Shown: positions 18,801-58,363 of the stretch, piece by piece
Numbering within the stretch: the first letter of the stretch is position 1
Layout of the letters: each line of letters starts with the position of its first letter
Assembly: GCA_964035545.1 (NCBI GenBank)
Contig: OZ037767.1
Span: 10,116,581-10,180,580 of the forward strand
Source of the DNA: Bugula neritina
Lineage: Eukaryota; Animalia; Bryozoa
DNA: 64,000 nt
Direction: 5' to 3'
Notes under the pieces: generated by a model
Told to the model about the DNA's origin: nothing
Databases searched by the model: none
What the model saw: the letters and a program-made list of their open reading frames with translations, nothing else
Made by a program: the position numbers and the translations under genes

Positions 18801-21800
18801 AAATTGTGTAATAAATACAAGTATCTACAAAAGAAAATATGTTTTTAAAATATACTTTAATGAGAATACCAATTACAGCTAAGCAGTTACTACATATTTC
18901 AAACAATCTTAATCATTGTTATTGTGATTACAAATAATTCTAACTTGAAGGTAGATTTCCTCGGGTTCAAGCACAGCTTCGTAGTGAATGCAGAAAGTTA
19001 CAGCGAATTTCAGGTCGTTTAGTGACCAGGTCTGGTTGTTATCTGCACATGCTACGGGCAGCTGAATCTCATCATTATCAACTGTAATGAAGTTAGAAAT
19101 TTATACACTTATAATATAATATAATAGTATTTGGAGTTATTCTCTTTTGACTGCATGAGGCTCCATTTTCAATACGGCAAACAAAACAATCATGAAATAT
19201 TTAGGCGTTGGATTATTTCATGACTCATTTTTATAGAATAAATATTGTTTAGCCACAGACCAACATAACAAAAAACTGATGTTTTAAAGATCACATTCTT
19301 TAACAAAATGGAACTGTAATATCAAAACCTAATGAGTCTGTTCAATGCAGTTTAGCGATAGAATAAGCAATATAAAAGTTTCATACAGTACATTGGAAAG
19401 GTGTATTAAGACAGATACACTGTTCACAACACACAGAGGAGCATCACAGGTAGCGTGATACTTACTTTCCAGACTACCAACAAGGTTGATAAGAGGACGG
19501 GTTTTGAAGAGAAAAGCTTGGTTAGATTTGTAGGCACCTATTGCAACGTCATCGTAGCTACAAGTAGAGATATCAAGAGTTTACAAATTATACATGTTAT
19601 ATACATACATTAGTCATTATCCAAATGGTTATATACTGTTGAGTAGGTGAAGTACGAAATCCAGTTAATTGGCTGGCATTATATGAAGTAAATGATTAAA
19701 GTTTAATTTTTAACTTTTTCCTGTAGTTCATTGAAACTATTTACATTGGAAATTGAAGGAGGTCAAAACATTAAGAGATGCTCTTTCAGTGTGGTATTTC
19801 ATGTAGGCAGGGAGCTGTGAGTATTCTTATCATAATATATCTTATTATTTAAAATCATCTAAATATATCGTATTATAATTACATTTTATACCATAATATA
19901 CCATGCAATAGCATGTTATGTTATAATATATCATATACTCACAGGTTACTGTCAATATCTAACTTCCCGGTGATTGACCATCCAAAAGTATATGGTGGGT
20001 TAGCAGCTGACACGTCTTCTGCGTATATAACCTGCAAGACATGCTTTGGATGTTTATACAGTATACATATTACAGTATACATATACAGTGTACATATATA
20101 GTGTATATATACAGTGTACATATACAGTGTACATATTACAATATACATATACAGTGTATAAATACAGTATACATATACAATGTACACTATATATGTATAC
20201 TGTATATCGTGTGTATTTATAGTGTACATATTACAGTATACATATACAGTGTATGTATACAGTGTATACTGTATATAGTGTGCATATACAGTGTATATAG
20301 AGAGCAAAGAATACACAACATGTGTGGATACAGTACAGATAAGCCTCAGGTATGTGTGCGTCATATCGCAACATCCACATCCACACAAATCTTTATACAC
20401 TCGCATCTGTATACACATATTATATCTATATACACATGTCTCTATATACACATATATCTATCTATATACATCTATAAACCTCACCTGAACTGGTGTTGTT
20501 ATCAGGCCAGTCTCAGACCCGTGATACAAGAAGACAACTCCTCTCTTGTCAGGACCGCCATAAGGCGCAGACACCATCAGCTCGTCAAACCCATCTTTGT
20601 TCAGATCTCCAACATTTGCCAGAGCTAAGCCGAATCTACCGTAAGCGTCTTCACCTGCATTTCAACAAAAATAACTTATCTTAATATATTATATAAAATC
20701 TTCATCTGTTGTTATTCTATATAGTGAGCAATTTATAGATTATTATGTTTCAGGCTATGTGTTTGATAGATTGACAAACTTTTCCTCCTGGTATTCTTTC
20801 ATGCAGACTCTTGACATGTTTATGTTTCAAAGAATTCAGACAAAAATAGAAGCTGCTTGAACTACTAAACATCCACATAATATTTTTGAACACAAATTTT
20901 TCTGCCGGTTTCATGGCTTTATTCTAAGTTCAGGAACCTTGTAAACAACCTTTCAAAAACAATTGTTCTAGTAACTAATTGATTGATAACATAGATTACT
21001 TTTGATAAAATTCTTGATTCATTGCTAAAGTTATTTTGGGTAACATAATAAATTGAGAACAATATAAAACATGGAAGAGAGGAATTTTTTGTCCTGGAAA
21101 TGATACAAAAGTGCTGAGTGGAGTAATTGTGCTGAAACCCTTGTTCTGAATACAATATTTTGTTTGGTGTTCAAGTAAAATAGACTGGGGTCTTATAAAA
21201 GTGAATATAAAGAAGAACTTAAGCATGAAATAATGCCAATAACTTATAAGACATGAGTGCAGAGGCTGATTTAGAAGGTTAATCAATCAACTTGTATTTT
21301 TAGTTGTATTTCCTGTGACAACTTCCAAGAAAGTAAACCTCTTAAAATATTTTACTTTAAACCATGACGACCACATAGCTTGAGGACTTTCAATTGATAG
21401 CAGAAGAATGTTTATGACTAGATTCCCTTTCTGACATTACTGATAATTCTGTTAAGATTTAGCTGCTAACATAACACTATGTGTATCACATTAGATCAGT
21501 GACCGAATCAAGGCCATCTCAGGGCACCCATTTCTAATTGACGTGATTTGATTTAATTCAATTTATTAATTGATGCCATTTAATTTTTTAATTGCCAAAA
21601 ACTGCAAGTAGTCTACTGGCTGCTACCTTGTAAAAATAATTAATTCAACATTCTAATTTGAAAAAAAAGGCATTTATTGCTGTAATAAATTTATTTAATT
21701 TTTTATTCAAATGCACATAGTTGTTGAAAATGACGTTTTAAAATTTAAACTATGCTATAATATGTTTCAAATAAATTTTATGCACAAATTTGTATATTTT

Positions 21801-24800
21801 CAACAACAAGTATTTTGGCATGCGGACACATTTGTTATAGTACGCCAGGAGTAAACACACAAATCAAGTAACAAACAAGCCAACTATAGAAGTGCAGAGA
21901 ACTTTTTGAAACCAAATTTTAGTAGAGTATAGACTAACCTGTCATTTTTGCTGACTGAAAGAATACTGTTTGACTAGTAGACATATTATGACAGAAGACG
22001 GTAACTTGACCAAGTTCTGACATGTCAGCGTCATAGTTGGCGTACAAAGGTGCTGACACAACAATGTCATCATACTTTCCACCTGACTCACCTATAAGAA
22101 CAGTCACTGAAACTCAGTAAGGCAAGTTGGTAATCATCATTTACAGTATGCAAGGCAGAACTTTGTAACCGGAGTATTGTATAGAAAGATCACACAATAA
22201 AGCACAGCAAAAACAAAATCACATGGCCCAAAGGATGTTATAAGAACATTTCCTCTGCAGAATAGTCTTTGGCTGTTAGGGACTTACCATTAAACTTGCC
22301 AACGGCTATGCTGTACCCAAAATAGGCCCCCGACTGCTCTCCAGATATATTGACTACGGATCTGAAACTATTGGTTGCAGTTTTGGTCCAGAGCAGAATT
22401 TTTCCTACAATGATTTCAGTATCTTCACTGTTAACAATGATTATGTTACATCACATAAAATAAAGTTCTGATGAGGGATCTAGATTGAACTTAGATTATC
22501 ATTTCCAAAAAAGAACTTTATAATCAACTTTGGTTTAACTTTAAAAGTTATTTTGAGTGTTCAGTTTAAACCTATTTTGCAATATTTATTAGTACCGTAA
22601 ATAACATATATATCTACTAAAATCTACAGCAATGCAGCCTGCAAGCAGTATATAAAAATTTATCAGCAAAAATCTAGAAGCAAGCAGATAGTCCAGAATA
22701 AACTGCATATATTTGGTAGTCCTACACCAAATAGTGTTAAATTTTTCCAGAGAGATTATCTAACATGAAGAAGCAAAGGTGCTAAGCAATTGAAAAACTT
22801 CATTTCTAAAAACTCTTTGCAATTGACCTACCAAACAGTGTGCTAAACTCTTACATGTATAGCCCTGAATAAGTCTGTGTCACTCAAATGTTGTTTCAAA
22901 TTTACAAAACTTTAACACAGCCTTGTTTAAAAATGACTTGTTGGAAAGTGAAATACCGAAGTACCTTTCAACATGTTAGCTCTTGGTGCAGAATTCACGT
23001 AGTCAACGGTTGTGTTGTCTCCATCAAACTCACCAAACTTTAGATCCCATGACAAGTAGTTGTTGTCATCTGATGTGGGCCCATCACCTGCAATAAAACA
23101 CTAGTGTAAGTTCCAGATTACCCAGTAGCCCTGTGGTGTAATGGTTTATGTGCCAGCTTGCAAGCCAGAGGTCTCGGGTTCGAATCCCATTGAGGGTAAA
23201 TCTTTTACATAAGTGTTGAGTAATTTACACATGCGGACACTCTACTCTACTAATAAAACATCAAAATACCTCGACTAAGCATAATTTTAAAACTGATAGA
23301 TAAAATGCTTCCGATAAGATACTTCTAGTTACTGACGTATTTAAATGTTAAGTTACAGTGCACTAATTGGCTCTAACTGACATATTTAACTTGTAGAACT
23401 AGAGGAACTAACGTGTAGAGATGAATCTCAGATAGTCATTTTGAGGATTTACGCTGTACAATGCGCCATGGAAATAGTAGTTGCCAGGAGCTCCGATTGC
23501 CAACTCATTATCAGGACCCAGAGCCGCAGAAAATCCGCACATCCCGTGTCCGGTCCTGTGGTAACTCGCCTACAATACAGCCATAGTTTCACTTCTTGCT
23601 TCACTGATGCAAAGGCATGCAGAGTTAGTAAAAAGTAAGAGAAATATGTGTTGATACTATAGGAGGGGTTTTTAACTGGGGGGGGGGAGTATACTAGCGC
23701 CTCCAGGGGTTTTTGGAAATGTTTATGGGTATTTTGTCAATACTCCTCAGCTTAGTACTATACTGTGTAAATCATTACTATAATATTGAGCACGAACTAG
23801 TAGGGGGTATTCAGAGTTTTGAGAGAATATAAAAGAGCACACAGATTAAAAAGGTCAGGGAACTATGAGTATTTTACTTTTTTTAATAGACTATTTGTTT
23901 TCTATTAGTTTATAACTTTTGTCATTGTAGAAATAATTGTGTGTATTATTACTCCCTAAATTACGAACAACATAACAAGAGTAAATAGTAATTTATACAC
24001 ATTAATTAGGTAGTGGGTTTTTCTTTAGTGCAGAAGGTTGGTGGTTAACCGAAATAAATATTGTTTACCGTAGTGTTACATATAATATTATTATGGCAGG
24101 TTAGGCAATTTATGGTCAGCTATAATTCTATCAAAACCCTGAAACTGTTTTATGATTTATTTTAGGAATCATAAAAAAGAAACCTTAAAAAATTTCAATT
24201 TAAAATAATTAAGTTACCTATTTTATCATGTATAATATGATATTATATCTACTTGTATACTATAAATACCTACATTGACATCTATTTTAAGAGACACTAC
24301 TGTATAAATATTATTATAATTGGTGGAAGTAGAATTCATAGGCTTCGTGAATACAAGGTTTCAATTTACGGAAAACCTTATAGCTAGAAATTATGCTCCT
24401 GTGCCTCATTCAAATAAGTCCTTAGCCCGCTTTAACGAAAACACTTTCTATCAGGGGTTTCTCACAGGGATAGCGACTATAAACTTGCGTGAGTTTTTTG
24501 TAGCTAGAAATTAGTCCGTATACGTTGTATATTAATCCTTGTCACTTTAATGGCTGTATTGTCTGTACAGCTGTCTCTTATACATGAATGGTTTAACTTT
24601 GAAGTATTCGTTCAGCATGAGTTGGAATAAATTATGTATTCTATTTAAGTGTGGTTTTGTTTGATTACTGGGAATTTCCTTTTTTTCAAAAATTATTTAA
24701 AAAAATAGAAATCTGAATATTTGTGTACTTATTTATCCTGTGCATACAAAGCATACATAGAGTAGCTGTAGCTCTGCACTGTGGAGAATTGAAAGATTCA

Positions 24801-25578
24801 CTCACCCAACCCTTGTCTGACGATACATTCCCGTAAGCAGCTCTATAAAAGGCATCAAATTCACGTAAACAAGGAGAAACTCTACTAAAACTGCCGCCAA
24901 GATCTTTGGATACAAAGCAGTCTCCAGTTGGTTCACGCTTATTTCCACGCGGCCCAAACGTTACGTATAATGGGGCGCAAGCAGCTATAACCGACCCGTC
25001 CCGACTTGATGCAACACTAGCACCAAAGAACTGTTTACTACGATCTTCACCCGTTAAATTTTCATAACCTGGATAATCTGTGAGTTGAGTGGGCCGATCA
25101 TCCACTGACACCACACTGCAAGTTACCGAATCTAAAAAATACGGGCAGTGAATAAAAAAGTGGTGCTCATTTGAATCAATTCATATTTAAATTTTACTTG
25201 ATTAGTTTGAAATAAAGCTTATCAATTTGAAGCATTATTAGCACTAAATTAGCAGTTGAGAAATATGCAAACGTTTGTCATAAAATATACTGTACGATAA
25301 CCCAGCTGTTGTGAATACATACCAATTTCACAACGATATATGGCACCACTATTGGTAACATTAAACCTTGAAAGTGCATCAGTAGTCGCTTTGGGAGCCC
25401 CAATAATTAACTTGTTCCCTCTAAAACTGTTGATGGAAAGAGCTACTGAATATCCAAAGTAGGAGTCGTCATCTCCATTGTACGTGATTCGAGAAGACAA
25501 GTCCACATTTAACAACTGATTCATAGGAGAATGTATTAGGATTAGTATTAGAGATAAAGTAAAGTAGGGTGTAAACAT
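12857..25578 (-). CDS. Integrin alpha subunit, complete, 18 coding exons, no alpha-I domain
   Basis: Exons at 25323-25578, 24806-25131, 23413-23569, 22965-23087, 22288-22404, 21939-22091, 20485-20654, 19943-20031, 19466-19557, about 18946-19081, 18548-18686, 16916-17110, 16142-16324, 15650-15969, 15215-15343, 14235-14417, 13197-13382 and 12857-13048. They encode a signal peptide, FG-GAP repeats (YFGYSV..IIGAP; YFGYSIAVG; RFGLALANVGDLNKDGFDE; FGWSI...DIDSNLYDDVAIGAY), C..DL, NEGEDSY, CDVGNP, an RYKR furin-type site, a transmembrane segment and CGFFKR. Confidence 0.95.
13980..14202 (+). mobile_element. tRNA-headed SINE, family 2
   Basis: Head gcagccttggtctaggggttagagcg...ggtttgaacc, body tgatgttaggaagagcatccag; 3' part matches 24390-24510, 5' part matches 38988-39110 and 39690-39725. 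Confidence 0.75.
14973..15177. mobile_element. MITE (Tc1/pogo-like TIRs)
   Basis: TIRs gtgctccctcgttatctca ... tgagatacggagggagcac. Confidence 0.65.
16400..16602 (+). mobile_element. MITE-like element with ggtaaaaatggcac subrepeats; inverted copy at 44385-44591
   Basis: gtgtccggtaaaa...(ggtaaaaatggcac)n...aaaatttaacatcagtg; the reverse complement occurs at 44385-44591, ending ttttaccggacac. Confidence 0.75.
20055..20300. repeat. Degenerate minisatellite (catatacagtgta-like) in integrin intron 7
   Basis: Repeated tacatatacagtg units; source of spurious Y/I/V/C-rich ORFs. Confidence 0.85.
23123..23208 (+). mobile_element. tRNA-derived short repeat, family 1 (best-preserved copy)
   Basis: A box tggtgtaatgg, central cttgcaag, B box ggttcgaatcc; the anticodon stem does not pair canonically. 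Confidence 0.75.
24390..24512 (+). mobile_element. 5'-truncated SINE family 2 copy
   Basis: tgctcctgtgcc...tccttagcccg.tttaac...tcaggggttt.ctcacagggat..gactataaacttg.gtgagtttt matches 14088-14200. Confidence 0.75.
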
Positions 25579-26864
25579 TCTCGTAAATAGTTAAAAGATA
25601 ATTTGATTTTAGTTCCCGCATTGGAGCCAATTGGTAAAACTCAACGGGCTATAAATATATTCCATCAGCTGTAAATAGTCTTTACGTTGAGCAATTTTTC
25701 ACTATTTCGTCAGCCATAATATTCTCCAAGGTGAAGCTGGTCCTAAAAGCAGCAGATTTAAACATGTGTTAGTTGATGACCTGAAATAAGATTGTGATAC
25801 ATGTAATAGTGACCACTATCTGCTATAGCACTATGAGAAATAACTTATTTTATTGTATTACAGTAGAAGAGCCCCAGTTATAGATATGCAGGTTATAATT
25901 GAGCCAACTAATAAGATTCGGGTATGCATATACTATAAAACTATAACTACACATTACAGAACAACTATTATAATTATAATCAGTAATTAACAATCTATTA
26001 TTTTGGGAGGAACAAGGAAACACAACATCCAAAACTGTACTGATGCAGAATTGAATAGATGGCGTAGTAATATCTGCAGACTTAAGTTCCTGAAAGTTGA
26101 TTGATCAAACACTAGCTACTAGCCTAATTTCCATTAAAATACTAAGTCAATGTTACGCTGATAGGACAAGAGCCTTTTCGAAGTGGTGAAAAGTGAAGCG
26201 ACAAAACAAAAACAGCCCCGACTTCAAACCATGAGTCATAATAGAAAAAGCTGCATCGGCAACAGAACATCAATTTATCAAAGTTAGTAGAAGATATCTA
26301 GAGTGTGCTGACAAGAGAGTCAGCCATAAATGTCAATAAAATAAAACTCAAGAGTTGCCTGCACATGCATGCTAAAGTACACAAAGTTATTTGTAACCAC
26401 CAGTTAACAGTGGTCTGCTAAATAATTTAGTATATATGCACGACATGTATTCACATCACCACATGAATAGTTCCAACATTTATTTATGTTGGTTCATGCA
26501 TTCCATTATATTATGAACACTGAACTGTACTGATATATTACTAATAGTGTATAGTCACTCAGGGTACTAATATATAACTAATAGTCATTCAGGTTGCTGA
26601 TATATAGTAATAATAGCAATTATTTAGATTTTAGAACAACAATTTAGAATTTGCACCTTCTTAAAATTAACATCTAGGCTACAGGTTAACACAGCAGAAA
26701 TTACTTGTATGTTTTAATTTGACAACACAAGTCATTTTAATAGCAATTATAATTAAAATTGTAACTGTAGGCTTTGAACAGTGGTCACATCTACCACTGT
26801 GGATGTCACATAAATTTAGATGCAAATTCAAATCCAGGCTTAAAGTAGGAGATTAACTACTAGA

Positions 26865-27050
26865 AGTAATACTGCTACTGCTACCACTACTACTACTGTT
26901 ACTGCTACTGTTATTCTTGCTGATACTGCTAATTTTACTGCCACTGATATTGCTACTGGTACTCCTATCACTACTGCTACTGTTACTGCTACTGTTCCTG
27001 CTACAGTTACTGCTACTGTTACTCCAGCTGATACTGTTATTGCTACAAGT
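26865..27050. repeat. Degenerate (ACT/GCT/GTT) trinucleotide repeat
   Basis: actgctactgttactgct... repeats. Confidence 0.8.
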
Positions 27051-29759
27051 TATGGCTAATCAAAATCATCATTTACCAAAAAGAAGAAGACGAGATATGT
27101 TACAGTAAGACTAAGAGCAAGTAAGAGTAATAGAAAATCTAAAAAAGCCTCTAATCTAGATGAGAAGTCTCACAAGAGAAACTAAGTTCTTATAATACTA
27201 TTAACAACTATCATTTCAAACTACAATTCATGAAAACAGAATTTGAACTATGAGCAAGAGAAAACCTTCTTTCACTAAATTTCGTACCTCTATACTTTAT
27301 ATTTATATTATAATATAGGAAGGCCACACTGTGTAATAAAGCAGACTATGGTTATAATAAATTTATTATATTGTTATATCTAAATATATAGGTAACGATT
27401 ATTCACTAAATTAAATTTAATGTATTATAACTATAGGCCTATGCCTTGTTTCGTGATTAATTAATAGTTGATATGAATAATTACAGATTTATATAGGTAA
27501 CAATTCATACAATACTGAATACTCATACTAGTTCACACACAGTGAGTATAGTAACACTGTTGGTTAAAAAACATAAATTTAAACAGTAATTGACTAATTC
27601 TTACTTATAAGTCTAAGTGTTAAGTTAGGTAGAATAAATAGTAAATCAAGATATATACATGATAATTCCTTTTCAACAGTCATGTAGATGTAACCATTAT
27701 CAATCCAAAATCAAATAAAAATGTTCAACGGTAAGTGTACCTTTGAGCAAAATACTAAATTTAATAGTACTAAAAAGTATAGTATCAGTATGACTACGAG
27801 TTGAACACTGTAACAGTAACTGTAATACTAAAACAATGTGAGAATATCAGTTATTAGTGTTACCAGCAAAAGTAGTGTAGGTGAGTCAATGAGATTATTG
27901 CCTGGTATTTAGCTGGTACGACTAGCTAGCTACTAGAACACTACTTCCACACCCTGCAGTCACATACCATTTGCCAATAGGGAAACCATACCAGCTGTTA
28001 AATCAATCACCCGTAACAACGAACAGGGTTCACGGCTTTCCTATTAGTCTGGCAAATGCAGTTGTAATGCTAGCCTTGTAATTATCAACTTTTCCATCTC
28101 GTGAAATTTATGACAGCCTGTTGTGTGGAAAATGTGGATATGGAAATGGTTTTGTAATGTGACAGGAGCCAATAATATTTACTATCAGCTACTGCACTTG
28201 TGTTATGATGAAATCATAGAAACTGCTACTACGTGTTGTGTGCAGCAGCAGTAGGCCAACAGCCCTGCTATATAATGTAGTCTTTCATATTGCATAGCAT
28301 ATGACAAAATGAGTTGTGGATATTACGTATAGCTATCAGTACCTATAACCCATACAAGTGCAAAAAGACACGGCTAGCATAGGCACAGGCTGTAAATAAA
28401 AACAAAATGATTTATTTTGAATAATTACTAATAATGATGAAGATGGTTATTGAAACACATTCGTAAAGTGTTTTTAAATGCTACCGTTACTGAGTTTACT
28501 TTTGTTTTATATATTCACAAATTTATCTAAAGATTCAAGCATTGAAATACCCCAGTATGAGCTGCAGAATTGCAACAGCTTTTAAAACTCTTTCACTTTC
28601 CTTTCCAATTTTTAAAACTTTTTGGGGATAAAAATTGATTGAAATAACTTCACTAAACTTTCGATTTTAGCTTTGTGCTAATGTAGTCTAAACTTTATAT
28701 CTATTAAAGTATTGTCTAGACTCTAGTTCTATTGAAGTATCTTCTAGACTCTACAGTTGACAATGTGTGGTGTAATAAATTAAGAAGAATGGGACAATAA
28801 GTTCACACTCTACACTGTCACAGCTATATTACTGTAAGCAGAGAGCTCCACCAATCATAATGTATAGACTCAATAGGATTTTGTAAAATGCAGCATTCAA
28901 TCCAATAAATAAATGATATAATGATTAACAATCTAAACAAAATCGGCAAACTTCTCAAAATGACAATTCGGCATAAAAGCCTAGCCACAGGAACTGTTCT
29001 ATAGAAAACCCAAACAATGTGATAACAGTCTACTGAAACAAGAGTATCACGTGACTTGCAGACTAAACTAGATGGTGTCTGGTATGTGCAGGTTACGTAT
29101 TTGCTGAGGTAGGTGCAGACGTGCAGTAATGGAGAAATTGAGAAAAGTCTGTGTTCTAAATTAGAAATGTAGCAAAAGAAGTGATATTCTCACAAGAATT
29201 TTAACCCTTGCCTCAAACCAAAGTTTAATAAAAACATTAGATAACTTAGGCTATCTTAGTTTCTTCACTACCATGCTCCTAAATGTATGGGTTTTAATCT
29301 GGCATTAAGATTGTAGAGTTCAGGTTAAAAGAGCATTGCTTCACTTAGCCTTCTCTTCACTGCAGGTACATAATAATGTACTGCTGCTCATGGTTATGAT
29401 ACCCAAAATAGCAAACAAGTGATCCATTTGTTTGGACTTTAGAGCAGAATATCGTGCTACCACTTTCTACAAAATATTTGACCATGTTGTTCAAAATTCT
29501 CTACTCATTCCAAAGGAATTCAACATTGTTTACGCTGTTGTTATGAGTAATTCAGCTATGTAGCTGTAGAGATACAATTTTATCCTAGCTTGTGTTTATT
29601 GCTACATGATTTCTTTATCTTATAGTCTGGTAATCTCTTATGCCACAAAGCTCTGCTAGAAACTAGCTATCAGTTCTGTAACCACATCAAGTAGTAGGTA
29701 AAATAATATATGAGTAGCTAAAATATGAACACACATACATTTCCTAACATATGCTAAGG

Positions 29760-30097
29760 CAGGGGTGTCCAACCTTATCAGAGGGAGGCCCACTGAAAAG
29801 GAATATTTTGTGGTGAGGGCCACATTGTAAACTTTAGCTTGTGCTGGGGGCCACAGCGTCAGTATTTTTTACATTATTTTATTCCAAATTCTTATGAGTC
29901 ATTATACAATAATTAGTGCCAATAGTTAATGCAGGCTGCATGTTTTGTAACATGTGTATAAATAGGATAATTAAAAGGGGGTTTCACTCTAATTCATGTC
30001 AAATGTGAAAAAAATTTGAGTTTTATGCCTTTGAGGGCCACATAAATCTATGCTGGGGGTCACATCCAGCCCTGGGGCTGCCTGTTAGACAGGCTTG
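29760..30097. mobile_element. hAT (Charlie-like) MITE
   Basis: Starts caggggtgtccaac, ends gttagacaggcttg, has internal gggccaca motifs, and an 8-bp TSD tgctaagg/tgctaaga. Confidence 0.75.
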
Positions 30098-30714
30098 TGC
30101 TAAGATTATATGCATACTGTATATAATACGTTATATACTGTAATATAATATATATAGTATGTATAGAAGGCATAGATACTATATTATATTATACTTGATA
30201 ATCTATAATTATACTATATTACTACATTACTATACCATATATGTTATATACTACATATGTTATATAATAGGCCTATATACATGGATTGTTAAACTAACAA
30301 TTTGTTGAGTCTAGCTCCACACTAGAACAGCAACCTGCAGGGTTTCAGAGTCAATAGCTTGGCTAGTTGAGATACTATTGGAGTCCCTATGACTAAGTCT
30401 TAAGTCTGCTAGAGCTATAATTCACCAATTAGCATTCATTAGTTTTATTATTCACTGCCAATTAGTAGGTTAATGTATCTAGTTATTGCATTCCCACCAA
30501 CAAACTGTCATTATATTTGATATTTCAAAATTAATTATACCTATGGTGGTTGTAATATAACTTGCCAGCACTAAATTGGAAGAAGAAATTGCAAGAGTTG
30601 CTGACAACTAATTATTGAAACAATTCAGGAATATCTTCTGTTACATAACTACTAATATAGTATTTTAGTAATTATAATAATAAACAATGTTGTGTATTAA
30701 TTATATGATAGGCC

Positions 30715-30834
<120 letters not shown>

Positions 30835-32932
30835 TTTTATTAATTGTAATATTATGTATAACATACAAAATGATATATCAATATAAAATAATAAATAATA
30901 TGTAACATAATATATTATATCCTTACCATGACCTTACACTCTATATTACAAACCATACATCATACAGGCATCATAAGTCATCATGTATATATATTATTAT
31001 ATAAGTATTATAAATATTTTAAAACATCTACTATTACTTGATCCAACAAATATCAATTGAGATTAATGTCAGTGTTTTATATATTTTATATATTTAATTG
31101 GCCAGCATCTTTCAAATCCACTTTGTTTTCAATGTTGCAATGACAAACAATGTAATGTTTCATGACAACTTTTCACACAAACAAAGATTCTACATTGAAA
31201 ATTGTAGGCTGCCCTATGAGTGTTATACAGTATGACCACATTTTACTTTGATGGTAAAGCTTTGATCTCATATATTCTTTGTTAAAAGCAAGATTGATGC
31301 CTGTGGTTATAGTCAAGAAGGTGATAATGAATTTTTTAGGTGTTTTATGAAGTATTTTCAAGCATTCATTTTCTAAGGAGTGCAAATGATGACCACAAAA
31401 CCTTAATCACACTCTAGCTGTTAGAATTTATATTTTCTGCCCAGTGCCTACAATTTGCAGAAATTACTTGAAAATACACTAATTATTGTTTATTTCAGAA
31501 TTGTTATGGTTTTCATTTAAAATTTACTTCAGTTTTATTTGAATTTGCGAAAACTTAATGCTGGTAGTTTTAATGCTACATAGATCACACGCCTAGTTCA
31601 CAACTTGACTAACATCTACATCTTCGTACAGTAAGTATATGTAAGTACATACAGACAATGAGTTCCAGTACATACATCTTCTTCTAAAAAGCATAATTGT
31701 CAGTGCATCATACATTTACTGCAAATGGCATGTATATTAACATACATCTATTTACAATGAGAATGTACACGTTAACAAGATTGCTAAATGATAACTAGTA
31801 ATAACTTACACTAAATACTATACTAACTCTGGACTCCTAAAGCTCTTAGTATAAAACATCTATATGAATTGTTTCTGGTGGACTAAAGTTGACTATCTCA
31901 TACTATTAGCTACTTATACAGTATTGATAAAATAGAAAGCATCAAAGAGCTGTATTGGCCACAATAATAGCTGCTAATTGATGTCCATCAGCTGAACTGA
32001 GAGGTAATTAGTTGCTGCCTGTAGCAAACAGCTCGGCAGCAGAATTTATATGGGGGAGGAAATCCATTCAAAAACTAAGACAGAAATTCACCTGTAATCA
32101 CCTGCTTGCTTCTAAAAACAATTTTATATCCAAAGAAGCAAAAATTCAGGTGCAGTAGTAAAAATTTCAATAGCCTATAATTTCATCAATTTGTTATAGA
32201 TTTTGGTTTAGTGCATGGGGTTAATTTATCATAAGAAAATGGCTTTTTTGCCACATTTCTATAATTGAGAACAAAGGCTTTTTTCAATTTCTTCATTGCC
32301 CCACCTATACCTTGAAACAGGCTTTATTACCAGAGATACATCTGAAATCTACTTACGTTATATGAAAATGAATACATTGAAGTTTGTACACTAAGAATTT
32401 TGGTAAAGCTAAAAATACTTCATCTAACCAAGTTGAGCACTTCAGCTTGGTAACTCTTGAACAATAATAACTGATAATAATGTACAACTATATCAATTAG
32501 CTCTATCTATCTCACCATCATGGAAAACCAATCAGGCAACATAGCTTTTTCAGCCTCTCTAACTATTATATATATAAAATATTTTATTTTTAGTTCAGAT
32601 TATAGTGTTGGAAATGAAAATAAATTAAATCACCCAATTGAAGCATCCAAATAAAGATTTCATTTCAATGTAAATCATTATATATCAAATTGTAGAATCG
32701 ATCAAACATTATAGCAGTACATGATTATCATTTATGTGATAAAATAATGTTATAGTTAAATGAACTAACAGGCCAGTAGTGGGGTTCAAATCAGGCAACA
32801 CTATATTATCAGTATCGGTCAGCCATTATCTATCTGACTAGTTCTGTTCATTTCTAATCCCAATGCTGACATGTTATTTTCGTTTAGCTAAAAGCTATTA
32901 TCATTATAGATTATGCACTATGAGAGCCTATT

Positions 32933-33133
32933 GCAGTAGTGATGAGATAATATTAGCTATAATATTATAATATTACTGCTAATATTATAATATTAGCAGT
33001 AATATTATAATATTAGCACGTACTAGCATGCATTAGCACATATTGGCATATTTTAGCACATATTGGCATATTTTAGCACATATTGGCATATATTAACACA
33101 TATTGGCATATATTAGAATGTCATCACTACCAC
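32933..33133. repeat. Composite element: short TIRs, 56-bp perfect palindrome, 20-bp tandem repeat
   Basis: gtagtgatga ... tcatcactac ends; palindrome 32960-33015; (agcacatattggcatatttt) x about 4 at 33034-33115. Confidence 0.75.
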
Positions 33134-34314
33134 TATATGTTAGCTCACTTTAATACTAGTTTCAGCTAGCTCAGTTCTTATTAGTGACTTGCTTTGCTTC
33201 ATAGTTGAGCAAAATTATTCTGTATCTTGTAATAAAGTGAAAAGAATTACATTCCCCTAATAGTCAATGGGGTGTGTTACCAATACATTAGCCTGGTTTC
33301 TTTAATCAATTTGAGAACAATCATTTGAAAGGGTATTCATCTGTATACCTGCTAGTACAGAATGGTACAAAGTTGACTCCTAACAGCTCAAACAAAATAA
33401 ATCCATCATAGAGGACTACTATTCTGTTTTTCAAAAACTTTCAAGTTTGTGAAGGGCATTGCTTTAGTGCATATAATAGGTACTAAGGTTAAAAAGTGGT
33501 CATTTCTATTTGGCAGTAACTGCCTCTTATACCAAAGCACAGAATGAAAAACAAGCAAGATGATAAAGAATAAACTGAAACGTCATAACAGACAGCACCT
33601 GAGTATGTTGGGCCCCATTATGGCTTACATGTAATCTACCAACAACAATAGCTTCAGCAAGTCACTGAAACTAGACTTAGATATAAAACCAACAAATTTG
33701 CTCACCCATAGGTTGATTCTTGGAGTGAAGAAATGATCACCAGTATCGCTACATCACTGCAGCTACACTATGACACACCTGATTACAATTCACCTTGAAA
33801 ATGCTGGTATTTATCAAAAAGATCCCTACTTACACAGCAACATCAATCTTCGGTCCATGGGCACCACATCAAGGCAGCTTTAGCACATTTACTTATTGCA
33901 GGAGACCACAGGATGTTGTTGTTTACGGAAATGCAACATTATTTGAGTGCGAGTGGAGGACAATGAGCTGTGTAGCAGGCTCTGTTGACAGCTGAAACAA
34001 AAGAAGCACCGGGCATTGCTTGTCACAGGCATGCTATATATTTTAGTGTACTCTGCTTTTAATTGATGAATCAATAAAACAATCATAAGTTCACACTTTA
34101 TACATAAATATGCTGATAAACAGAGTTTTTATTTTTTTAGAGAAAGTAGGCTAATAATGAAGTGTGCTTATGCAGCAAGCAAATGAAAATAAAATAACAT
34201 TTGCATAGTCAGCATAATTATATTACGGATACTTTCTAAATGTAAATAAAGTATACTAAATATTGATTTCATTAAATTAACAGGTTGCTATGGACAAAGC
34301 TACTGTTGTGAATC

Positions 34315-34572
34315 TATTAATAATGGGTATTGGTTATGATTCAATTATTAATAGGTAATGCTTATGAGTAAATTAAAAGTGAGTAATGGTTGTGACCCAA
34401 TCAATAATGGGTAATGGGTATGAGTAAAATAAAAAGGTGTAAAGGCTTTGAGTCAAACAGTAAAAGTAATGGTAATGATTTAATTGATAATAGCTATAAT
34501 GGCTATGAGTCAAATTACTAATGAGGTAGTGGCTATGGGTCAACGAATAACGGGTAAGGTTTATGATCAAAC
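34315..34572. repeat. Degenerate minisatellite (about 27-bp unit)
   Basis: Repeated taatgggtaatgg.tatgagtcaaat-like units. Confidence 0.7.
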
Positions 34573-35554
34573 TACTTCATACACATTCAGTAAAACTTAT
34601 AAACTATTCAATAAAAAATGAAAAAAATAATTAAATCAATGATAATAATGATAATAATGATACTAAATATTGGTTATTCATGAAATTGTTACCACTAATA
34701 ATTATTTTATAATTAAGTGGTTATCATTAAAATTAGCATTTTTGAAAAATCTAGCAATAAATATAAAATGATACTCACCAGCCCTGGCTGGCATCATCAG
34801 AGATATAAACAAGGTAGGAGAGCTCGGACATTAATTCGACAGAAATTAGCTAAATATTTTTGTTGTGTTAGCTGGTAGGAGCTATCTAAAGCAGCCAATG
34901 TATCTAGATTTTACAGATATTACTTTTATGGTAGTAAAGTAGAGTGTGTATCAGTTATTATACGTATACTTTTACTTCGCTAAACCATCAACAAACTACA
35001 TGCATGACTCAAATTGGAAGGGATATTATGAATGTAGTAAAATCTGCTATAAAGCCAAATCTTATTTGCTGCTTTTATTTTAGCTTTAAAAAATATTCAT
35101 TTGAAGTTGCTATTTGTAAGTTATAAATTGTAATATATGATATATGTTTATTTTGCACCGGTTTGTGTAGAGTTGAAACCTTCTGATGAAAATTGACAGT
35201 ACAAGTAGCTCTAAACTGCCACAATCACTCATTCAGCTAAGGAGCTGTTTCTATAGCAATTATCCTAACATAAATTGATTTACATAATGATATGCATGTA
35301 GTATCAATAACTAGTTACTATAAGTATAAAGTATGAATGGATGACATTTATTTACACATGCTTGAAATAATAAGGCACATGCAAATGTAATCATGACAGG
35401 TGAATTAGGTAATGAGCAACCATTATAAATACAAATAGTATAGTTATATAAATGATTAATTGTAGCAAATGTTAGGCTAGTCTACAAATCACATGTTGCT
35501 AATTATTATATAAATGTATATGCAATATATGTGCAGCCACAACGTAGAACCTAC

Positions 35555-38500
35555 CGAGGAATCATTTCTCAGAGTATGCAGGAAGTACTTTTGGTAGAAA
35601 GCCTTGTACTCATCCTTGCACGGTGACACCTCTGTGAACTGAGAACTATCTTTCAAGATGCTGCCATAGTAACACTTCCCTGTTGGTTCTACCTTGTGTC
35701 CCTTTTTACTCTGTCATCAAAATAAATAAATAAAATAAATAAATAAACAAATAAATTACATTTGTAAGTCGTTTTTAGTAGAATTTGGGTCACATGGTTT
35801 GATGTATTATAAAGATGAGGACAGACAAACTGTTAGCACAGAAATAAGAAATGTTGAAGAGTAAGATATATAATATAAAGTGTAGGCAACTACATTCTGG
35901 CATACATAAATGACCTAATAATTATCATACTTGTAGTTATTATGTGAGAGCCTAAACAGCAGGGTAGAACGTATAGCCAACAAAGTTTTAGTTAGACACA
36001 CAATCTGCTTATTTTGAATAACTAATACATCATAGTTTTGACAGGTCAATTTGTTTTAATTAGTTTCTGACAACTTTTTTCTCCAACTAGCAGGAATTAT
36101 TTTACACTTTTCAAGCTGCACTAAAATTATTAACATAATAATTTATACGACTCATACACAGGAAGTGTGTAAACTTGATGTGGAGACATGTTGCCAGTAT
36201 CATATACTAGACATTCAGATCAAAAAGCTTAGAGATCAATGCTTGTGTATCACCAGACATCTGTCATGGATTAAGACGTTTGTAGTATACCTTATAACCT
36301 TTGTTTCATTATTCACCTCTTTTAAAAGATATACTGGTTTATAATATGACATAATCCTTGTTTAGTATATATGCTCAGGCATTCTAAATATGTTAGCTAA
36401 TAAAACGTTAAGCTTCTCCACCCTATTCCTTTAAGTGCAATAAAAAAGAATCTTTAATAACCCAAATTTTTAATTTTTCTACAGAATTTTTGATTTAGAA
36501 CAAAGTGAAAATGTTGCAAATGCCTATACACTTCTTTTGCTGAATTTTTTTCTAGAACACTGACTTTTCCCAATTGTTCTCCTATACTACACCTATAATA
36601 CTTAAAAATTCATTCTACATATAATGTATACAAATGGTTTCAATGGTTTCATTTATTGTAGCTTTGGTTTAGTAAAGTACTAAATAGCAAAATAAACTTA
36701 TAACAAAGTGTTTACTGGAAATCAAGACTGATGGATGAAAACACTGAACCTAATAAAACTTGTACATTATGCATGTTTATAGCTGGTGACAAACTCTGTT
36801 TATAATAGAATTGTCACAGCATGTCACAGCATGTCACGCCTTGTATCAGCACGTGCATGTATCTTGTTAGTCAATATTCAAATCATGTCATTCAGCTTAA
36901 GTAAAACATTTCCAGACAATTCAAAGAAAAAGAAAAAATGTTTTGACAAGTTTTCAAATTCATGAACTTGTTTTATAGAAAAGTGTTAATGTCTTTACCT
37001 ACCTTTAAATCAATACTGTACACAACATAATAATTATGGTTACGCACACGCTATGAACAGCCATAACAATTTATTTAAAACTTTAGCTCTTAAATTGCTG
37101 TCAAATGTACTAAGTTCAGCATAATAAAGTAAAATGATTCATCACGAAAATGCAGCATCTAAGAGAAAGACAACTCTAAAGCTAACACATTGCAATGAGG
37201 TAGTTCTTCTATTCGTTTCGGTATGGACCTTTAGAAAAGTAATCTCAGTTTAATTCATTGCATATCGTCTAGAAAAGCGCACGCGAAAGATATTTAGGTT
37301 TACTCTACAGAACAGAATATAGTTTTAGCACATGCTTTTGGAACTAGCCATCGCATAGTTTGAGCATGCAGCGTGTGTCGTAACCTTAGGTTGTCCAAAA
37401 TTCATGCTAGGCTTATTGTTGGAACTGATAATATAAAATAGAAAGTTGTTTTCAGCTTCAACTCTTTGCAGCATACTGTTGTAGTTGAACTCATAATGAA
37501 TGAAAAAGGAAGGGATTTGCATAATAACTATGAGTCACTAACAATCATCAGTATGTCGAAATCATGTGCACTAAACTCCAACAAACATTTTATTTGATTT
37601 ACGCATTTTTTTATAAAGCCTGTTGCACTTACATGAAACAGCAGCAATCATTTTAACAAGCAATGACAGACCCACACTTCAATCACACAGGAATGGCAGA
37701 AGATAAGAACATTATTTAATTTGCATTTTATTACCTTTTATTAAAACAGATTTTGAGTCAAGCAGGATATTCAATTAACTCACTGAATCCAGCCACTGCA
37801 TCAAATGAGCAAACTTGAGTTAAATATAGCCTTACTGTCGCACTGATCTAAAGTTCCAACCTTCATTCATATAGCAGAGTCGGGTTTTCATGAACCATAA
37901 GAAGTTGTCCCACCACACTCACCTTGTATATATATCGAGGTGCACAGGTGAGCACAAATCCCGAATTCGGTTCTGTAGATAGTGTTGCTCCGAGCCACTG
38001 CCTAGTCTTGTTCTCTATAGGGTCAAAGTCGAAGTCTATTGTGGCTAAAAGTATAGTCATTTCATTATTATATTGTATACTTGTTAAGCTGGTTTATTGC
38101 ATACATCTTAGCTAATCACACACACAGTACACGCTAAATACTGATACCAATAAATATACCCATAACATTATTATCAATGAACTAAAACTTCCTTATAGGT
38201 TATAGTTCAATGATTATTATCATTATGATAAATTTCTCAAAATGTTCCTTAAGTCTGAAGTGAGTTTTGCCTTAGAATTGGCTACTTCTCTAAACTACAG
38301 TTTGTTTGCAGGATTTATAGGATTAAAAGTCGGTGAGACAATTCCTAACTCAAATCATAACATATTATTGTGAAAAAGTGGCTGGGCACTGTTTTTTCAA
38401 TTTTTGAATCATACTTACTAAGCTTTCATAATAAAACACTGGACTAAAACAAATTTTATATACCTACTAGATGCTCAGGTATCACATAGCCACATAATCT

Positions 38501-40552
38501 ATATGCGAGTAAACCAGAATGATTGAATGACAATCAAACCTTTTACTATTTGGATTTATCTACTCATCTGTTGTTGCAGCTAAATATCAGTTCCAAAAAC
38601 GAAGAGTACGAAAAAATCATATTAACATAATTGTAGTATATTATCATTAATATATTGAGCATATTGGTATCAGTACTAATAACATATATTATATTATATT
38701 ATATATCAGTATTACGGCATTACCTATATTATTAGGCGAGTCATCTATCTGTAACAAGCTACACTCGTTTGTAGAGCCGCTGTCTGACAGCGAACAGGAG
38801 TACACTCCCCCTGGCTCTATGATGTCATCATATCTGCTGGCATTGACTCTAGGAGCTCCAACAAGTAGAGTGTCGTTGAGGAACGAGACAGAGTAACCAA
38901 ACATCGTAGTTGTCTGCTCTGATAGTCTCCCATCCAGGTCACTAAAATAAGTAAGTTATATGGAGTCAGTAAATACGGAGCAGTAGCAGCCAGCCGTGGT
39001 CAAGTAGTTAAAGCACTGACTTAGTAAATAAAAGATCAGTGGTTTAAATCCAAATAAAGGCCATTAGTGATGTTAGGAAAGGCATTCAGTCGGAATTGCT
39101 TTCCCGTCACAATATAGAAAAGTATTTGGCTCGCTTAAAAACTGCCCTTTTTATCAGATGACCATAAACCAATGGGGGATTTTTCAAATATATTAGGGAC
39201 GTAGGTTACCCACCCCTACTGTAGATTTAGGTACTTAACTAAGGCATAGAATTATAGTTCTAATACGGGCTTGCAATAACACAGCTGAGGTCAGTAGAAG
39301 TTGGAGTAGTTGTAATATCAAGATACATAAATATTTATGGTATAATTAAATCAGCATATCAACATGTAGATAAGGGATCTAGTAATATGAAAGGGCTGTT
39401 CTGCATTATATAAAAGATGCATATCTATACAGCATGGCTTACAAATAACTAGTAAGATGAAGCAGATATAAAATATACACTAGTCATTCATTCATATAAA
39501 TGCTACTAGCCCAATGCTGCTCCGTGGCAGCATTTTCTATGCTCTTATATAACTCTTGGAAAATCTGTTAGAAATGTTCTAATCTAATTAAGCAACTGTT
39601 TTTGAAAAACAGTTAATATACTAAGCCATGTAATATAACTAAAATCTAGTCAATTCATTCAAAGCAGGTCAATGGTTTGAGTTCATGATTCAGGAAGAGC
39701 ATCCAACCATATTGATCCTGTGTCACAGTAAAAGCTATCAAACATGGTGTCAGCATAGTGAGAGGCACAGCCCATAGACTGCTTCAAAACCAATGCCATC
39801 AGTAATGGAGACTTCCAATGAGCGTAGCCTTACATAATTGCTAAAACTGTAGGTTTTTAGGCTGTTCTGGAACCCACCCCTAACCCTTTTGTATTCAAAA
39901 ACTTGAGCCATATACTCTTTTGAATTTGCAATCCTATAACTAGGGAGTACCTGATAGCATGTGCTCTTTGTTAGTCACTGAATGCTTACTAGATCATTAC
40001 TATATTGCAGAACCTATCTTTTATAAGGTTCTGAGTCTATGACTACCTTCCTGTCTACACTTGCTTCTTTGTTTTAATAAATACGATTTCAATTTCTCTT
40101 AAAATAAATTTGTATTGAAACTGCCATTAAAGGAGGTGATGTAATCAACATTCCTTGAGTCATCCATTAGCACAGTTAGGCATGTGTTCCTACATTAGTG
40201 TGAGTCATATATCAACATAAGTAAATATTACAGCACAACTGTTCGCAATGCTAAAGTCATTGTCAACTCATAGCCCATAGGTATAAAGCTGATTGCAGAC
40301 GGAGTCCATGAAATAACTTTTGAAATTAGGTCAAGGTCAAAGGTGAATTTTTCTAAATCTAGAAAAGGGTCTGATTTTTTCATTAGTCCAATTCAGCTAT
40401 TGTAAGGAATAGCTACAAAAATTATGTTGAAATATTATATAATATAAAGGTAATCCAAACCTGAATATTCTAACGGAATCCGTGTCTAATAAAAAGCCTG
40501 TACACACGGCAACCAGTTGGGGAAGGAGCTGCCATACGAAGTGTGACCTCAT
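35555..40552 (-). CDS. Second integrin alpha N-terminal module (signal peptide plus propeller blades 1-2; 196 codons, open at the 3' end)
   Basis: Exons 40461-40552 (MRSHFVWQLLPQLVAVCTG/FLLDTDSVRIF), 38724-38941 (MFGYSVSF..LLVGAP..GGVYSC), 37923-38044 (ENKTRQWLGATL...TCAPRY) and 35555-35710 (EPTGKCY...SPCKDEYKAFY). Phases 2/1/0/0 are compatible and there are no stops; no further integrin exons were recognised before 25578. Confidence 0.85.
38988..39112 (+). mobile_element. SINE family 2, 5' part
   Basis: cagccgtggtcaagtagttaaagcac.gacttagtaaa...aaaggccattagtgatgttaggaaaggcattcagtc matches 13980-14090. Confidence 0.7.
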
Positions 40553-43230
40553 TTCTTTAATATATTGTCAGGAAAGCTTTACTTGAAAGTTCCTTCTGCA
40601 AAACAAATAATAATATAATATTTGATCAATGAATCATTTTTAAGTTCTCTATTTTTCAACCTGTAAGTAGAGGAATTAAAAATCAATCAGAAGTAATCTT
40701 TAAAAAGCAGATTTGACTAAGCAGATGCAAAAGGATTGTTAAACCATATCTTATTTCAGTTCCTAGTGCCTGTTATTTTATAAGTTAAACCTCATAGTAG
40801 ATTGCGTTGATAAAGTAATTTCTATTTTATGCTAACATTCAGATCACACCTGTAGAAATTTACAGGAGGGTTGTTTGACCAATAGATCTCATCCTTACAT
40901 TGAGCTATTTTTAACACGCATTTTCAGTAGCTAATTTAATTGTTGTTGCTAGTTAGTACAAATATTGTTATACCAGCTAGCAACATACTTTGTCTGTTTG
41001 AATCTGGTCATTTTCAAAATGTTATTCTTTAAATCAGCAGAAGCTTGGAAAGCATGAAAAGTTAATGAGTGTACTATTTACAAATATACCACTGTCACCA
41101 TTTAGGTGTATGAACTTGTTCCAATAACCGAAGCCATTTAATTGCCTTTACAAACTCTGTTTTTAGACATTTCTTAAATTACTTTGCTATACTCATCATC
41201 TAGAACTCAGGTTCCTCCATTACTGTTCCTGCCTCATGATCACTACTGTCTCAACTTTGTAATTAAAGCTGATAGTGTTATAATTGGTTGAAGAGCATTG
41301 ATTATTCAATCAATCTTGGACAGCAAATGTTTACACCCGTTGTACTAATTTTTTGAAAAACAATCCTTCTTTTGTTCTAAAAATCTTAGAAACTGTGCAG
41401 CGATCACTTGCTTTGTAGAAAAATCAGTATAGAAAATGCATAATCATGCAAAATATGAAGATCACTTTCTTAGTCAGAATGTAAATAAGTAACCTGTTTT
41501 ATTTGTCCACCATATCCTACATTCTGTTCCATATTACTGAGGACAACTTTCACAGCTAAAATTTGCATATTGGAAATAAGATTTGTGCATTAGATATCTT
41601 GTATTTAGTATTATATTATTATTTATTATTCAAGTTAACCCTCTTGGGGTGCTAAAGGTACAGTATATACACCTGCTTCTACTCATGCTGTTGTGCCATT
41701 ATGCTAAGTTACTAAATGAGAACACAAAGAGGCATATTAAACTAATTAATGGATTATGTTTTATATTACTAATCATGTAAATCAATGTTTATTAGATTAA
41801 TAAACAGTCACAGCTCTTTTCAGCTCAATTCAGATTCCTAGGTTTATAGGTTTCACTGTCGTAATAACCATGTCACAAAGAAAGAATGAAAGTTAAGGCT
41901 GCACAAGAACATTGCTATATACTCAAGAAGTACCAGCTATAACCTCTACATTTTTCTTTTTACGTTAACAATTTTGAATGTAGGAGCAATAATGGAGAAA
42001 TTGGAAAAAGTAGGTGTTTTAGATGGAAAAATGTAACAGAATAAGTTATTTTTCCAACCTGTTCACCAGACTAAAGATAAAGATTATTTTTCTACACCTA
42101 TAATAACTTGATAATAAAATTGGTGGATTTTTACCTGTGTTTCCATGCAACAGCTACAGTAAAAGTTCATAGTGCAAAGAAAATAAACATCAGATGTTAA
42201 CACCAACACATCATTAAATGCATTTAATTCCTTAAAATTGAGAATTGAAAACTTTAGAAAGTTAGTTGTTGTAAATCATTACAACGACATGACTACAAAC
42301 ATACAGTGTAATATATACTATTTTAGTTAACCTAACTTGTTGGTTTTACCATCAATTTTTACACAAGTTTCCAGAATAGTCTAAATTCTAGAACATACAA
42401 TCGTCTAGAAAATATAATATATAACTAAAGAATGATTGTAGAAAAGTTTACTTTGGTGCAGCCATGCAGAGACATCAAAATTTGTTCAGTGTGGGTTTAC
42501 AACTTTTGGTTTTGCTTCTAATGCTACATTCATGGACCAGAGCTAGTTCTAGCCAGAAAACTGCAACCTCAATGAGTTACAGATAAGAAGTAATGGAGAG
42601 TGGTAAGATACCCCTACTCGACCAAGGTTGAAAAGTTTACATATTTAATTTATAGGAGACAGACATGCATAAACTAAATTTTGCCTAAATTCCAGAAATA
42701 TTCTAGCCTACAGTGGTAAGGCATTGTCTAGTCACCATCTCCAGCCAGTTTGGTGAACTCATAGTTCTGACTGAAACTTCACTGTTGAGATCTACTGATA
42801 CTACAAGAACTAATATTACTAATTATGCAATTACTTCATATCAACCGACATCCCAGGAAATACTGGCACAAGACATAAATGTAGCCTGAAGTTCACATGG
42901 TTGTTGGTTGCTTAAAACAAGCCAATTTACGGGATAGAAAGATGTCACTATACTGTGAAATTGTGATTGTAGTCCAGTAAAGCCTGTTACGGTTAACACA
43001 AAGCTAGCTGCATATACATATTTGTGTTGTTTACCAATACTACATTATAACTACACTGTCTTATGTCTATTCTATATCAACAATGCTTCTAGTCACATTG
43101 TTTCAACTGTTTATTTCCATCACACTTTGCAGCTGCTATATTTGTCAATTAATTAGTTTTTGTAAACTTTTAGAAGTTATAGCCGTCTTAGGCTTTTATT
43201 AATTAGTTTCTACAAGGCGGCTATGTCTGT

Positions 43231-43444
<214 letters not shown>

Positions 43445-44384
43445 AGAGCTAAACTTAATGTATGTACATGTAATTGTCCTAGTTGTCTAATACAACAGGT
43501 AAGAGGGTAAAAAACTAAAGCATGATAAAATAAAAATCCAGCAATATATCTTAATAAATGTTACATAGCTCTACTGAGCTTTATTCTGATTATATAACTA
43601 TTACTTACTTGCTGCGATGTAGAGACTTACCTCCTGAAACAGAGAAAGTGTTTGAACTGAACAAGGAAGTCACGTACTATGGAAAAATTGACTTAGTATA
43701 TTATACCTGATTAGTCACTCCTTCTTTATAAAGAAGATTGAGCTTACAAATTGTGTTTAACTGACTCAGTTAGTCACTCTCACTAATGAAAGTTTTACAC
43801 AGCTGTCTTAACTACTAAGGCTATATAACCCAGATAGCATCTAATGGGTATACATTTCATAGCTTAAGGTTAAAGGTTAGCCATAGATTACATCAGTGTG
43901 TGAAGCCAGCAGCACCTCAGATATAAGTGGCAGCAGCTGCATGCTATACATCATGTCTAATATAAGGTATAAAGTCATTTCTCGAAAGGTCTGACACCCC
44001 CTCCTTAGCAAGCTCCTGTTCTTTTTTTATTTTAAGACTAAAGGTTATTTAAGTATTCATACATTTTAAAGTAAGCTCATCTTAAGAAATTATTATCCTG
44101 CTTCCATCTTGTGATCACTTATATTATTAGTCTATGACTCAACTTCTGTTAGTCACAAGTCATAGTGGTTTCTTTGTATAGTTTACATAATAGCTAGCTC
44201 ATAAGTGTGGAGGCAGTACCAAAACTATCAGCAGATTCTATAAGTCATTTAACTTTTTACCGGCCAAGAAAATATTTTTAGGTGTAAAAAGGAGTGGGTA
44301 GAAGTGCTGTGATGCTTTTATGTCTAGTTGTTAAAATGATATCTTGTTACTTACAACCTGTATTCACTGATTTTAGGTCAAGAT

Positions 44385-58172: not shown

Positions 58173-58363
58173 GTTTGTGATGCTATTATCATCATGTTTG
58201 AGCTATTATTACTGGTGTGTAGGCTGCTAGCTCTAAGCATGTCAAGAAATACCCTATATGTACAAATACAAAAATTACGTAATCTTTCATACGAATAGTT
58301 CTGCGATTTGAATTGCAGGGCGCAGGTGGTGAAATGGCGGCAAGTGATGAAATGGCGGAGCAA

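Follow-up and report, generated by a model that had tools for sequence, protein, structure and literature searches.

Can a single integrin alpha gene provide two different heads for one body? The question is raised by a 64,000-nucleotide stretch of the genome of the bryozoan Bugula neritina (GCA_964035545.1, contig OZ037767.1, positions 10,116,581 to 10,180,580), referred to here as the window and numbered from its first letter. An RGD/PS2-type integrin alpha gene lies on its minus strand, with two 5' coding modules, A and B, and one constant body (Table 1). We consider it likely that two heads are placed on this one body from separate promoters, with B and A each spliced to constant exon 3. 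The arrangement is a real, selected feature and very probably represents one gene with two functional heads. The two-headed reading is preferred because of selection on module B up to its donor, collinearity of the locus between assemblies, the lack of another body, an RNA junction between A and exon 3, and a branch in the RNA contigs at the exon 3 acceptor.

Module A comprises two exons (coding parts 25578-25323 and 25131-24806; 582 nt, 194 codons), and module B comprises four (40552-40461, 38941-38724, 38044-37923, and 35710-35555; 588 nt, 196 codons). Each encodes its own ATG, signal peptide, blades 1 and 2, and most of the blade 2-3 loop. All introns of both modules are GT-AG, there are zero stops in either, and both modules end at a phase-0 donor 21 residues past the SPC motif. 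Constant exon 3 (acceptor 23569) is likewise phase 0 and accepts A and B alike in frame. This anatomy had been proposed in a preliminary description made from the letters alone, and it was confirmed when coordinates, introns, and reading frames were recomputed. The constant region contains 16 exons encoding 853 amino acids, from blades 3 to 7 through the legs to the transmembrane (TM) helix and GFFKR motif, with the stop at 12857; the predicted chains from the two heads are 1,047 and 1,049 amino acids long.

The gene is predicted to encode an integrin alpha chain of the RGD/PS2 type without an I domain. Seven FG-GAP blades were recognized, two of them module encoded and five constant. The immunoglobulin (Ig)-like thigh and calf legs, TM helix, and GFFKR tail are present according to PF20805 matches, the gene model, and a weak PF00357 match. 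The Asp equivalent to alpha5 D227 and alphaV D218 is found in constant exon 4, with a weak E-value and a consistent register. The nearest relatives of the chain are alpha5, alphaV, alpha8, and PS2.

The two modules had at first been judged to be a quarter to a third identical; the divergence stands, although the computed value of 35% (62/178) is slightly above that estimate. Their alignment score of 195 compares with a maximum of 17.5 for shuffled sequences, and five aligned cysteines are kept. Internal intron positions differ between A and B, which points to an old duplication. The 21-residue part of the loop and the phase-0 intron are common to B, A, and the A-type exons of three other probable bryozoans, and this shared derived character ties B to the present gene. 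In a tree of heads, B has the longest branch and is sister to the four A-type heads (support, 90/71; 97 by Shimodaira-Hasegawa-like approximate likelihood ratio test with the loop left out). Approximately unbiased tests reject neither a grouping of B with A of B. neritina (p, 0.5) nor one of B with Capitella (p, 0.53), so the age of B is not fixed by the tree. No B orthologues were found in other bryozoans; their contigs extend no further than 8.1 kb upstream of A1, while in the window B4 is 10 kb off.

Module B is under strong purifying selection. A dN/dS comparison, named in the preliminary description as a check on B, was made against the sister lineage represented by GCA_010799875.2; this differs from the lineage of the window by about 15% in introns, and both belong to the B. 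neritina complex. For B, dS was 0.24, dN was 0.025, and dN/dS was 0.10 (27 synonymous and 11 nonsynonymous changes; Fisher p, 4e-11), compared with dN/dS values of 0.24 for A and 0.14 for exons 3-4. It is therefore highly improbable that B is what remains of a whole-gene duplicate that lost its 3' part and was recently silenced. Such a relic would account for the long branch and for a frameshift in B4 in one assembly, but the low dN/dS has been maintained over a split of dS about 0.24, every splice site is kept, and three short-read assemblies of the same lineage lack the frameshift.

The frameshift also explains how B has been annotated. Module B is 94% identical to the NCBI protein "if [Bugula neritina]" in GCA_010799875.2, and this stand-alone 190-amino-acid model is module B shortened by a 1-nt deletion in B4 (VXIV02002733.1). 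Because three Illumina assemblies of that lineage carry an intact 156-nt B4 exon with its donor, a true frameshift was rejected and the deletion attributed to assembly error. The public annotation is thereby corrected: the "if" gene model is module B.

Where the constraint ends is informative as to the use of the B4 donor, which four sister assemblies retain. Over the final 14 codons of B4 there are five synonymous changes and no replacement changes, whereas the 21-codon read-through beyond the donor has two synonymous and four replacement changes. Constraint thus stops at the donor, indicating that the donor is used. This bears on the possibility that B is a separate small gene that ends locally, by read-through of the donor or in an unrecognized terminal exon, and yields a secreted or membrane-tethered two-blade fragment. 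In both lineages the read-through does run for 21 hydrophobic codons to a stop at an identical position, and NCBI annotates a stand-alone gene. Against this, the read-through changes as expected of neutral sequence, in contrast to the codons before the donor, in which no replacement is seen; the NCBI model depends on the 1-nt error; and no conserved terminal coding exon was detected, although the scan would overlook one of very short length. A pair of blades from a closed seven-blade propeller is also unlikely to be stable by itself. We regard a locally ending B as improbable. When B4 is joined to the acceptor of A2 or to that at 25742, a stop follows after 2 or 10 codons, respectively, and the first acceptor in frame for B is that of exon 3; no other completes the propeller.

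No blade 3-7, leg, or TM exon was found between 25.6 and 35.5 kb by tblastn, by profile scan, or by a scan for coding signatures in two lineages, in agreement with the preliminary description, which had noted none of its own for B. In the two-lineage scan for spliceable, indel-free open frames, B's own exons ranked at the top, and no coding signature was detected elsewhere in the gap between B and A, where a very short exon would escape. Genome-wide profiles of FG-GAP, leg, and tail regions, together with an annelid query of 30% identity, recovered this body and one other integrin alpha. Head profiles across the genome matched the A and B exons only, and neither a third module nor an orphan body was found in the window, in the 40 kb upstream, or in the genome, these searches giving lower bounds. 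Exon 3, exon 7, and B2 are each single copy in the genome.

The other integrin alpha gene (C5:11244107-11263432, plus strand) is complete, with its own signal peptide and blades, and is of the PS1/laminin type by its motifs. A cluster of FG-GAP matches at C5:406-410 kb was considered as a further integrin and rejected, having no head or leg match. Several annotated invertebrate integrin alpha "fragments" of 200 to 240 amino acids end shortly past SPC; these are probably split models, and some could be extra heads.

An independent long-read assembly of the sister lineage matches the window collinearly, starting upstream of B and continuing to a point 370 nt short of the ATG of A; 95% of the B-to-A gap is aligned to it. 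Misassembly of the B-A arrangement, a concern raised in the preliminary description, is excluded by this collinearity. The same comparison bears on whether B belongs to a complete paralogue, with a body that was collapsed in assembly or lies elsewhere. The genome searches score top candidates alone and failed to recover some exons of known genes, which leaves room for such a body; yet the interval is the same in two independent assemblies, from lineages that differ by about 15% in introns, and the annelid query picked up exons of the distant C5 gene as well as of this body and no third body. A hidden paralogue is accordingly a very remote prospect.

RNA evidence for splicing into exon 3 came from assembled contigs of four runs of the sister lineage, from three studies, aligned to positions 20100-26000 (A and exons 3-7). 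The A1-A2 joint is spliced in 4/4 runs, and in run X3 a single contig passes through A1, A2, exon 3, and exon 4, establishing the junction from 24806 to 23569 that had been suggested for examination. In runs X7 and X10, from two studies, the exon 3 contig begins exactly at 23570, the one base common to A, B, and the intron; the A contig runs over exon 3 by the assembler's overlap of k-1. The exon contig wholly accounts for the bin depth in these runs, so no contig covers the intron. The pattern at the exon 3 acceptor in X7 and X10 means that a second sequence enters exon 3. We infer that the B-to-exon-3 junction is in all likelihood used. RNA depth was rejected as proof of a second input to exon 3, since 3' bias explains it. 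In exon 6, a second in-frame acceptor lies 9 nt downstream (22091-22083), with RNA contigs breaking nearby, and may give a three-residue variant.

How the head is chosen depends on what lies upstream of each module. A conserved acceptor (25743|25742) is located 164 nt before the ATG of A. The run X1 contig begins exactly at 25742, and in the A contig of run X7 position 25742 is preceded by 18 nongenomic nucleotides plus AG; both lineages have identical genomic sequence over the 21 bases before this point, and it does not match X7's 18 letters. Since contigs start or diverge at 25742, at least some transcripts reach A1 through splicing. The 18 nongenomic letters before the A1 acceptor (25742-25744) may represent an upstream exon of the untranslated region (UTR) or a spliced leader. 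B1 is preceded by strong conserved acceptors at 40595 and 40660, seen in the genomic sequence. A1 and B1 are thus probably not first exons, and a capped first exon, either a UTR exon or a spliced leader, is to be expected upstream. The preliminary description had called this a variable-first-exon locus with alternative promoters. Its two heads on one body are well supported; "first exon" is probably wrong, as acceptors precede both A1 and B1, and the promoters are presumed.

Two promoters, near 28 kb and 43.7 kb, would best fit these features, the main rival being a shared leader or trans-splicing. The donors of the leader candidate upstream of B (43631 and 43609) score 10 to 12 on the gene's own donor matrix. 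Upstream of A, a tract of A[C/G]T phased at 6 nt exceeds shuffled sequences between 26.5 and 28.0 kb, and two conserved donors, at 27992 and 27968, lie above it; an A-specific promoter near 28 kb probably has this tract as its first intron or outron. Further such tracts above shuffles occur at 50960-51500, at 57500-58500, more weakly at 42500-44000, and near the C5 integrin gene.

The same two proteins could instead arise from one promoter near 43.7 kb, with the head chosen at the RNA level. A short leader might be joined to B1 or, 18 kb on, to A1, or trans-splicing at 25742 might free the A form from a B-initiated pre-mRNA; taken together, these variants seem rather doubtful. Choice at the RNA level would be consistent with the conserved acceptors before both A1 and B1, with the nongenomic letters plus AG before 25742 in X7, and with the start of the X1 contig at 25742, which is expected if upstream partners differ in their last base, as donors 43631 and 43609 do. 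However, the strong phased tract 0.8 to 2.3 kb upstream of A1 and the conserved donors at 27992 and 27968 argue for a promoter specific to A, and no report of bryozoan trans-splicing was found in the searchable literature.

Several points weigh against two heads spliced to exon 3 from two promoters. No read or contig displayed the B4-exon 3 joint, the RNA alignment having covered A and exons 3-7 only. The branch at the exon 3 acceptor could stem from an unlisted intron-retention tip, run X1 breaks at the 3' end of A without a listed partner, and the depth step in X7 from 24.9 to 51.4 also fits 3' bias (33.7, 60, and 107 in X3). Contigs cannot show transcript starts, so the promoters are putative. 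The genome searches are lower bounds, some of which missed this gene's own tail and calf exons.

On the two-promoter reading, the 5' part of a single PS2/RGD-type integrin alpha gene would have been duplicated in tandem long ago, leaving two heads and one body. Transcripts initiated upstream of B would splice B1-B4 to exon 3, skipping A inside a 12-kb intron. Those from the second promoter near 28 kb would have a short exon or leader from upstream spliced on at 25742, and A1-A2 would be joined to exon 3. Both chains would have blades 3-7, the RGD-binding Asp, legs, TM helix, and tail in common. The signal peptide, blades 1-2, and 21 residues of the blade 2-3 loop would be specific to each chain; in alpha5, ligand preference is tuned by this region. 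The two chains may thus prefer different ligands. A more general view is put forward tentatively, as a possibility: that an integrin alpha swaps the entire front third of its propeller, the part bearing specificity, by means of multiexon 5' cassettes, that the duplication may predate several bryozoan lineages, and that leader splicing from a single promoter or trans-splicing may be involved.

Solved human alpha5 and alphaV heads (PDB 4wk4, 3vi3, and 8vs6) are the closest structures by sequence and fold. The predicted fold of the mature B head had a mean confidence (pLDDT) of 86.7 and matched alphaV and alpha5 heads with a TM-score of about 0.75; single-sequence AlphaFold (pLDDT, 35) was useless. 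By alignment, the modules span alpha5 residues ~1-159 and exon 3 continues from ~160, such that the variable part covers the positions of alpha5 Glu81, Glu124, Asp154, and Trp157. Asp154 sets the fibronectin preference of alpha5 (PMC3317794), and Trp157 is, to judge by the title as cited in PMC3317794, the subject of Humphries 2000. Blocking-antibody epitopes of RGD integrins are clustered in the blade 2-3 loops (PMC4563375). The A and B chains would both keep the RGD pocket and differ in secondary specificity. From Cys to Cys, the blade 2-3 loop has ~30 residues here, compared with 13 to 25 in the other alpha chains retrieved and ~12 in human alpha5 and alphaV, which have one head per gene.

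Integrin diversity usually arises by whole-gene duplication, by alpha/beta pairing, and by single-exon swaps. The X1/X2 forms of alpha7 and alpha6 (laminins being the ligands of alpha7) and the Drosophila alphaPS2 exon 8 forms (m8 versus exon-8 forms) likewise derive chains with different propellers from one alpha gene, and these isoforms differ in ligand preference (PMC12564407, PMC2148222). In those genes single internal exons are exchanged, as the preliminary description had stated, under one promoter, and the signal peptide and blades 1-2 are shared, whereas each Bugula module has its own ATG and signal peptide and so is not a mutually exclusive internal exon of the X1/X2 type. Oyster integrin alpha-8, a PS2/RGD-type lophotrochozoan chain, has two versions of the blade 2-3 loop in isoform X4 (XP_034310650.1) and its counterparts. 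The apparently mutually exclusive segment of ~30 residues comprises the loop and the first strand of blade 3; the swap is internal and starts past SPC, and blades 1-2 are identical between isoforms. Its position just past SPC suggests that the blade 2-3 loop is a recurrent target.

Outside the integrins, UGT1A places variable N termini with signal peptides on one constant 3' region through a phase-compatible junction, by way of an array of many units with a single large first exon each. Clustered protocadherins resemble the Bugula gene in their variable N terminus with signal peptide, single constant 3' region, and phase-compatible junction, but have one large first exon per unit in an array of many (PMC4835542). 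Bugula has two copies, units of two and four exons behind acceptors, so the strict protocadherin/UGT1A pattern is absent; what it does have are tandem paralogous 5' cassettes with ATG and signal peptide and one shared constant region with a phase-compatible acceptor. The protocadherin/UGT1A analogy drawn earlier therefore holds for the variable head and constant body, and the closer analogue is chelicerate sDscam, in which tandem 5' cassettes of two or four exons are spliced to constant exons, sDscam-beta6 having two cassettes, each with its own promoter (PMC4835542). Both are cell adhesion receptor genes with multiexon 5' cassettes and shared constant exons. sDscam differs in belonging to the Ig family, in homophilic recognition, and in cassettes that are whole Ig domains, mostly in large arrays. 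The Bugula cassette is two blades of one seven-blade fold that has to close with shared blades, and its two cassettes are 35% identical, with differently placed introns and promoters that are only presumed.

The variable-head type of locus is thus known, and for integrins it is apparently new; nothing on a two-headed integrin alpha, or on Bugula integrins at all, was found in the searchable literature, the coverage of which is incomplete. Heads only 35% identical appear to close one propeller on identical blades 3-7 with an identical tail, a natural counterpart of the alpha5/alphaV chimera experiments in which ligand choice is altered and signaling fixed. The pair offers a direct test of the share of specificity held by blades 1-2 and the blade 2-3 loop. 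If the two-headed reading is true, integrins join the adhesion families (protocadherin, sDscam) that have converged on variable-head loci, and an animal in which only two alpha bodies could be detected has a route to ligand diversity that is new for integrins. Short "integrin fragment" models lying ahead of alpha genes in other invertebrates may also merit reexamination.

Table 1. Parts of the B. neritina integrin alpha gene and associated features (window coordinates)
Feature	Position	Strand	Remarks
Candidate noncoding leader exon upstream of B	43609..43658	-	Initiator-like motif; alternative donors 43631 and 43609, both conserved in sister assembly
B exon 1	40461..40595	-	Acceptor 40595, ATG 40552, signal peptide, N-terminal strand
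B exon 2	38724..38941	-	Blade 1 (FG-GAP)
B exon 3	37923..38044	-	Blade 1-2 loop and first half of blade 2
B exon 4	35555..35710	-	Remaining blade 2, SPC, 21-residue loop, phase-0 donor
6-nt-phased A[C/G]T tract upstream of A	26500..28000	.	Found also in sister assembly
A exon 1	25323..25742	-	Acceptor 25742, 164-nt UTR, ATG 25578, signal peptide, blade 1
A exon 2	24806..25131	-	Blade 2, SPC, 21-residue loop, phase-0 donor; in RNA, joined to A1 in 4 runs and to exon 3 in run X3
Constant exon 3	23413..23569	-	End of blade 2-3 loop, blade 3, shared phase-0 acceptor; single copy in genome
Constant exon 4	22965..23087	-	Asp aligned to alpha5 D227/alphaV D218, blade 4
Constant exons 5-9	19466..22404	-	Blades 4-7
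Constant exons 10-18	12857..19081	-	Thigh, calf-1, calf-2, TM, GFFKR tail, stop

Within introns of the gene, short interspersed repeats at 23101-23189 and 24394-24499 have very high RNA depth and belong to no Rfam family; the Rfam search found nothing. At the end of the window, positions 62256-63991 (minus strand) contain two open reading frames of 182 and 253 amino acids with no Pfam match. Between these and the integrin gene lie two tandem LEO1 paralogues on the plus strand, at 47800-50050 and 51600-57100, with 76 to 91% nucleotide identity in matching blocks. The pair is transcribed away from module B, and LEO1 is at the same place in the other assembly. The second copy contains a 28-bp minisatellite of at least 24 copies at 55015-55958.

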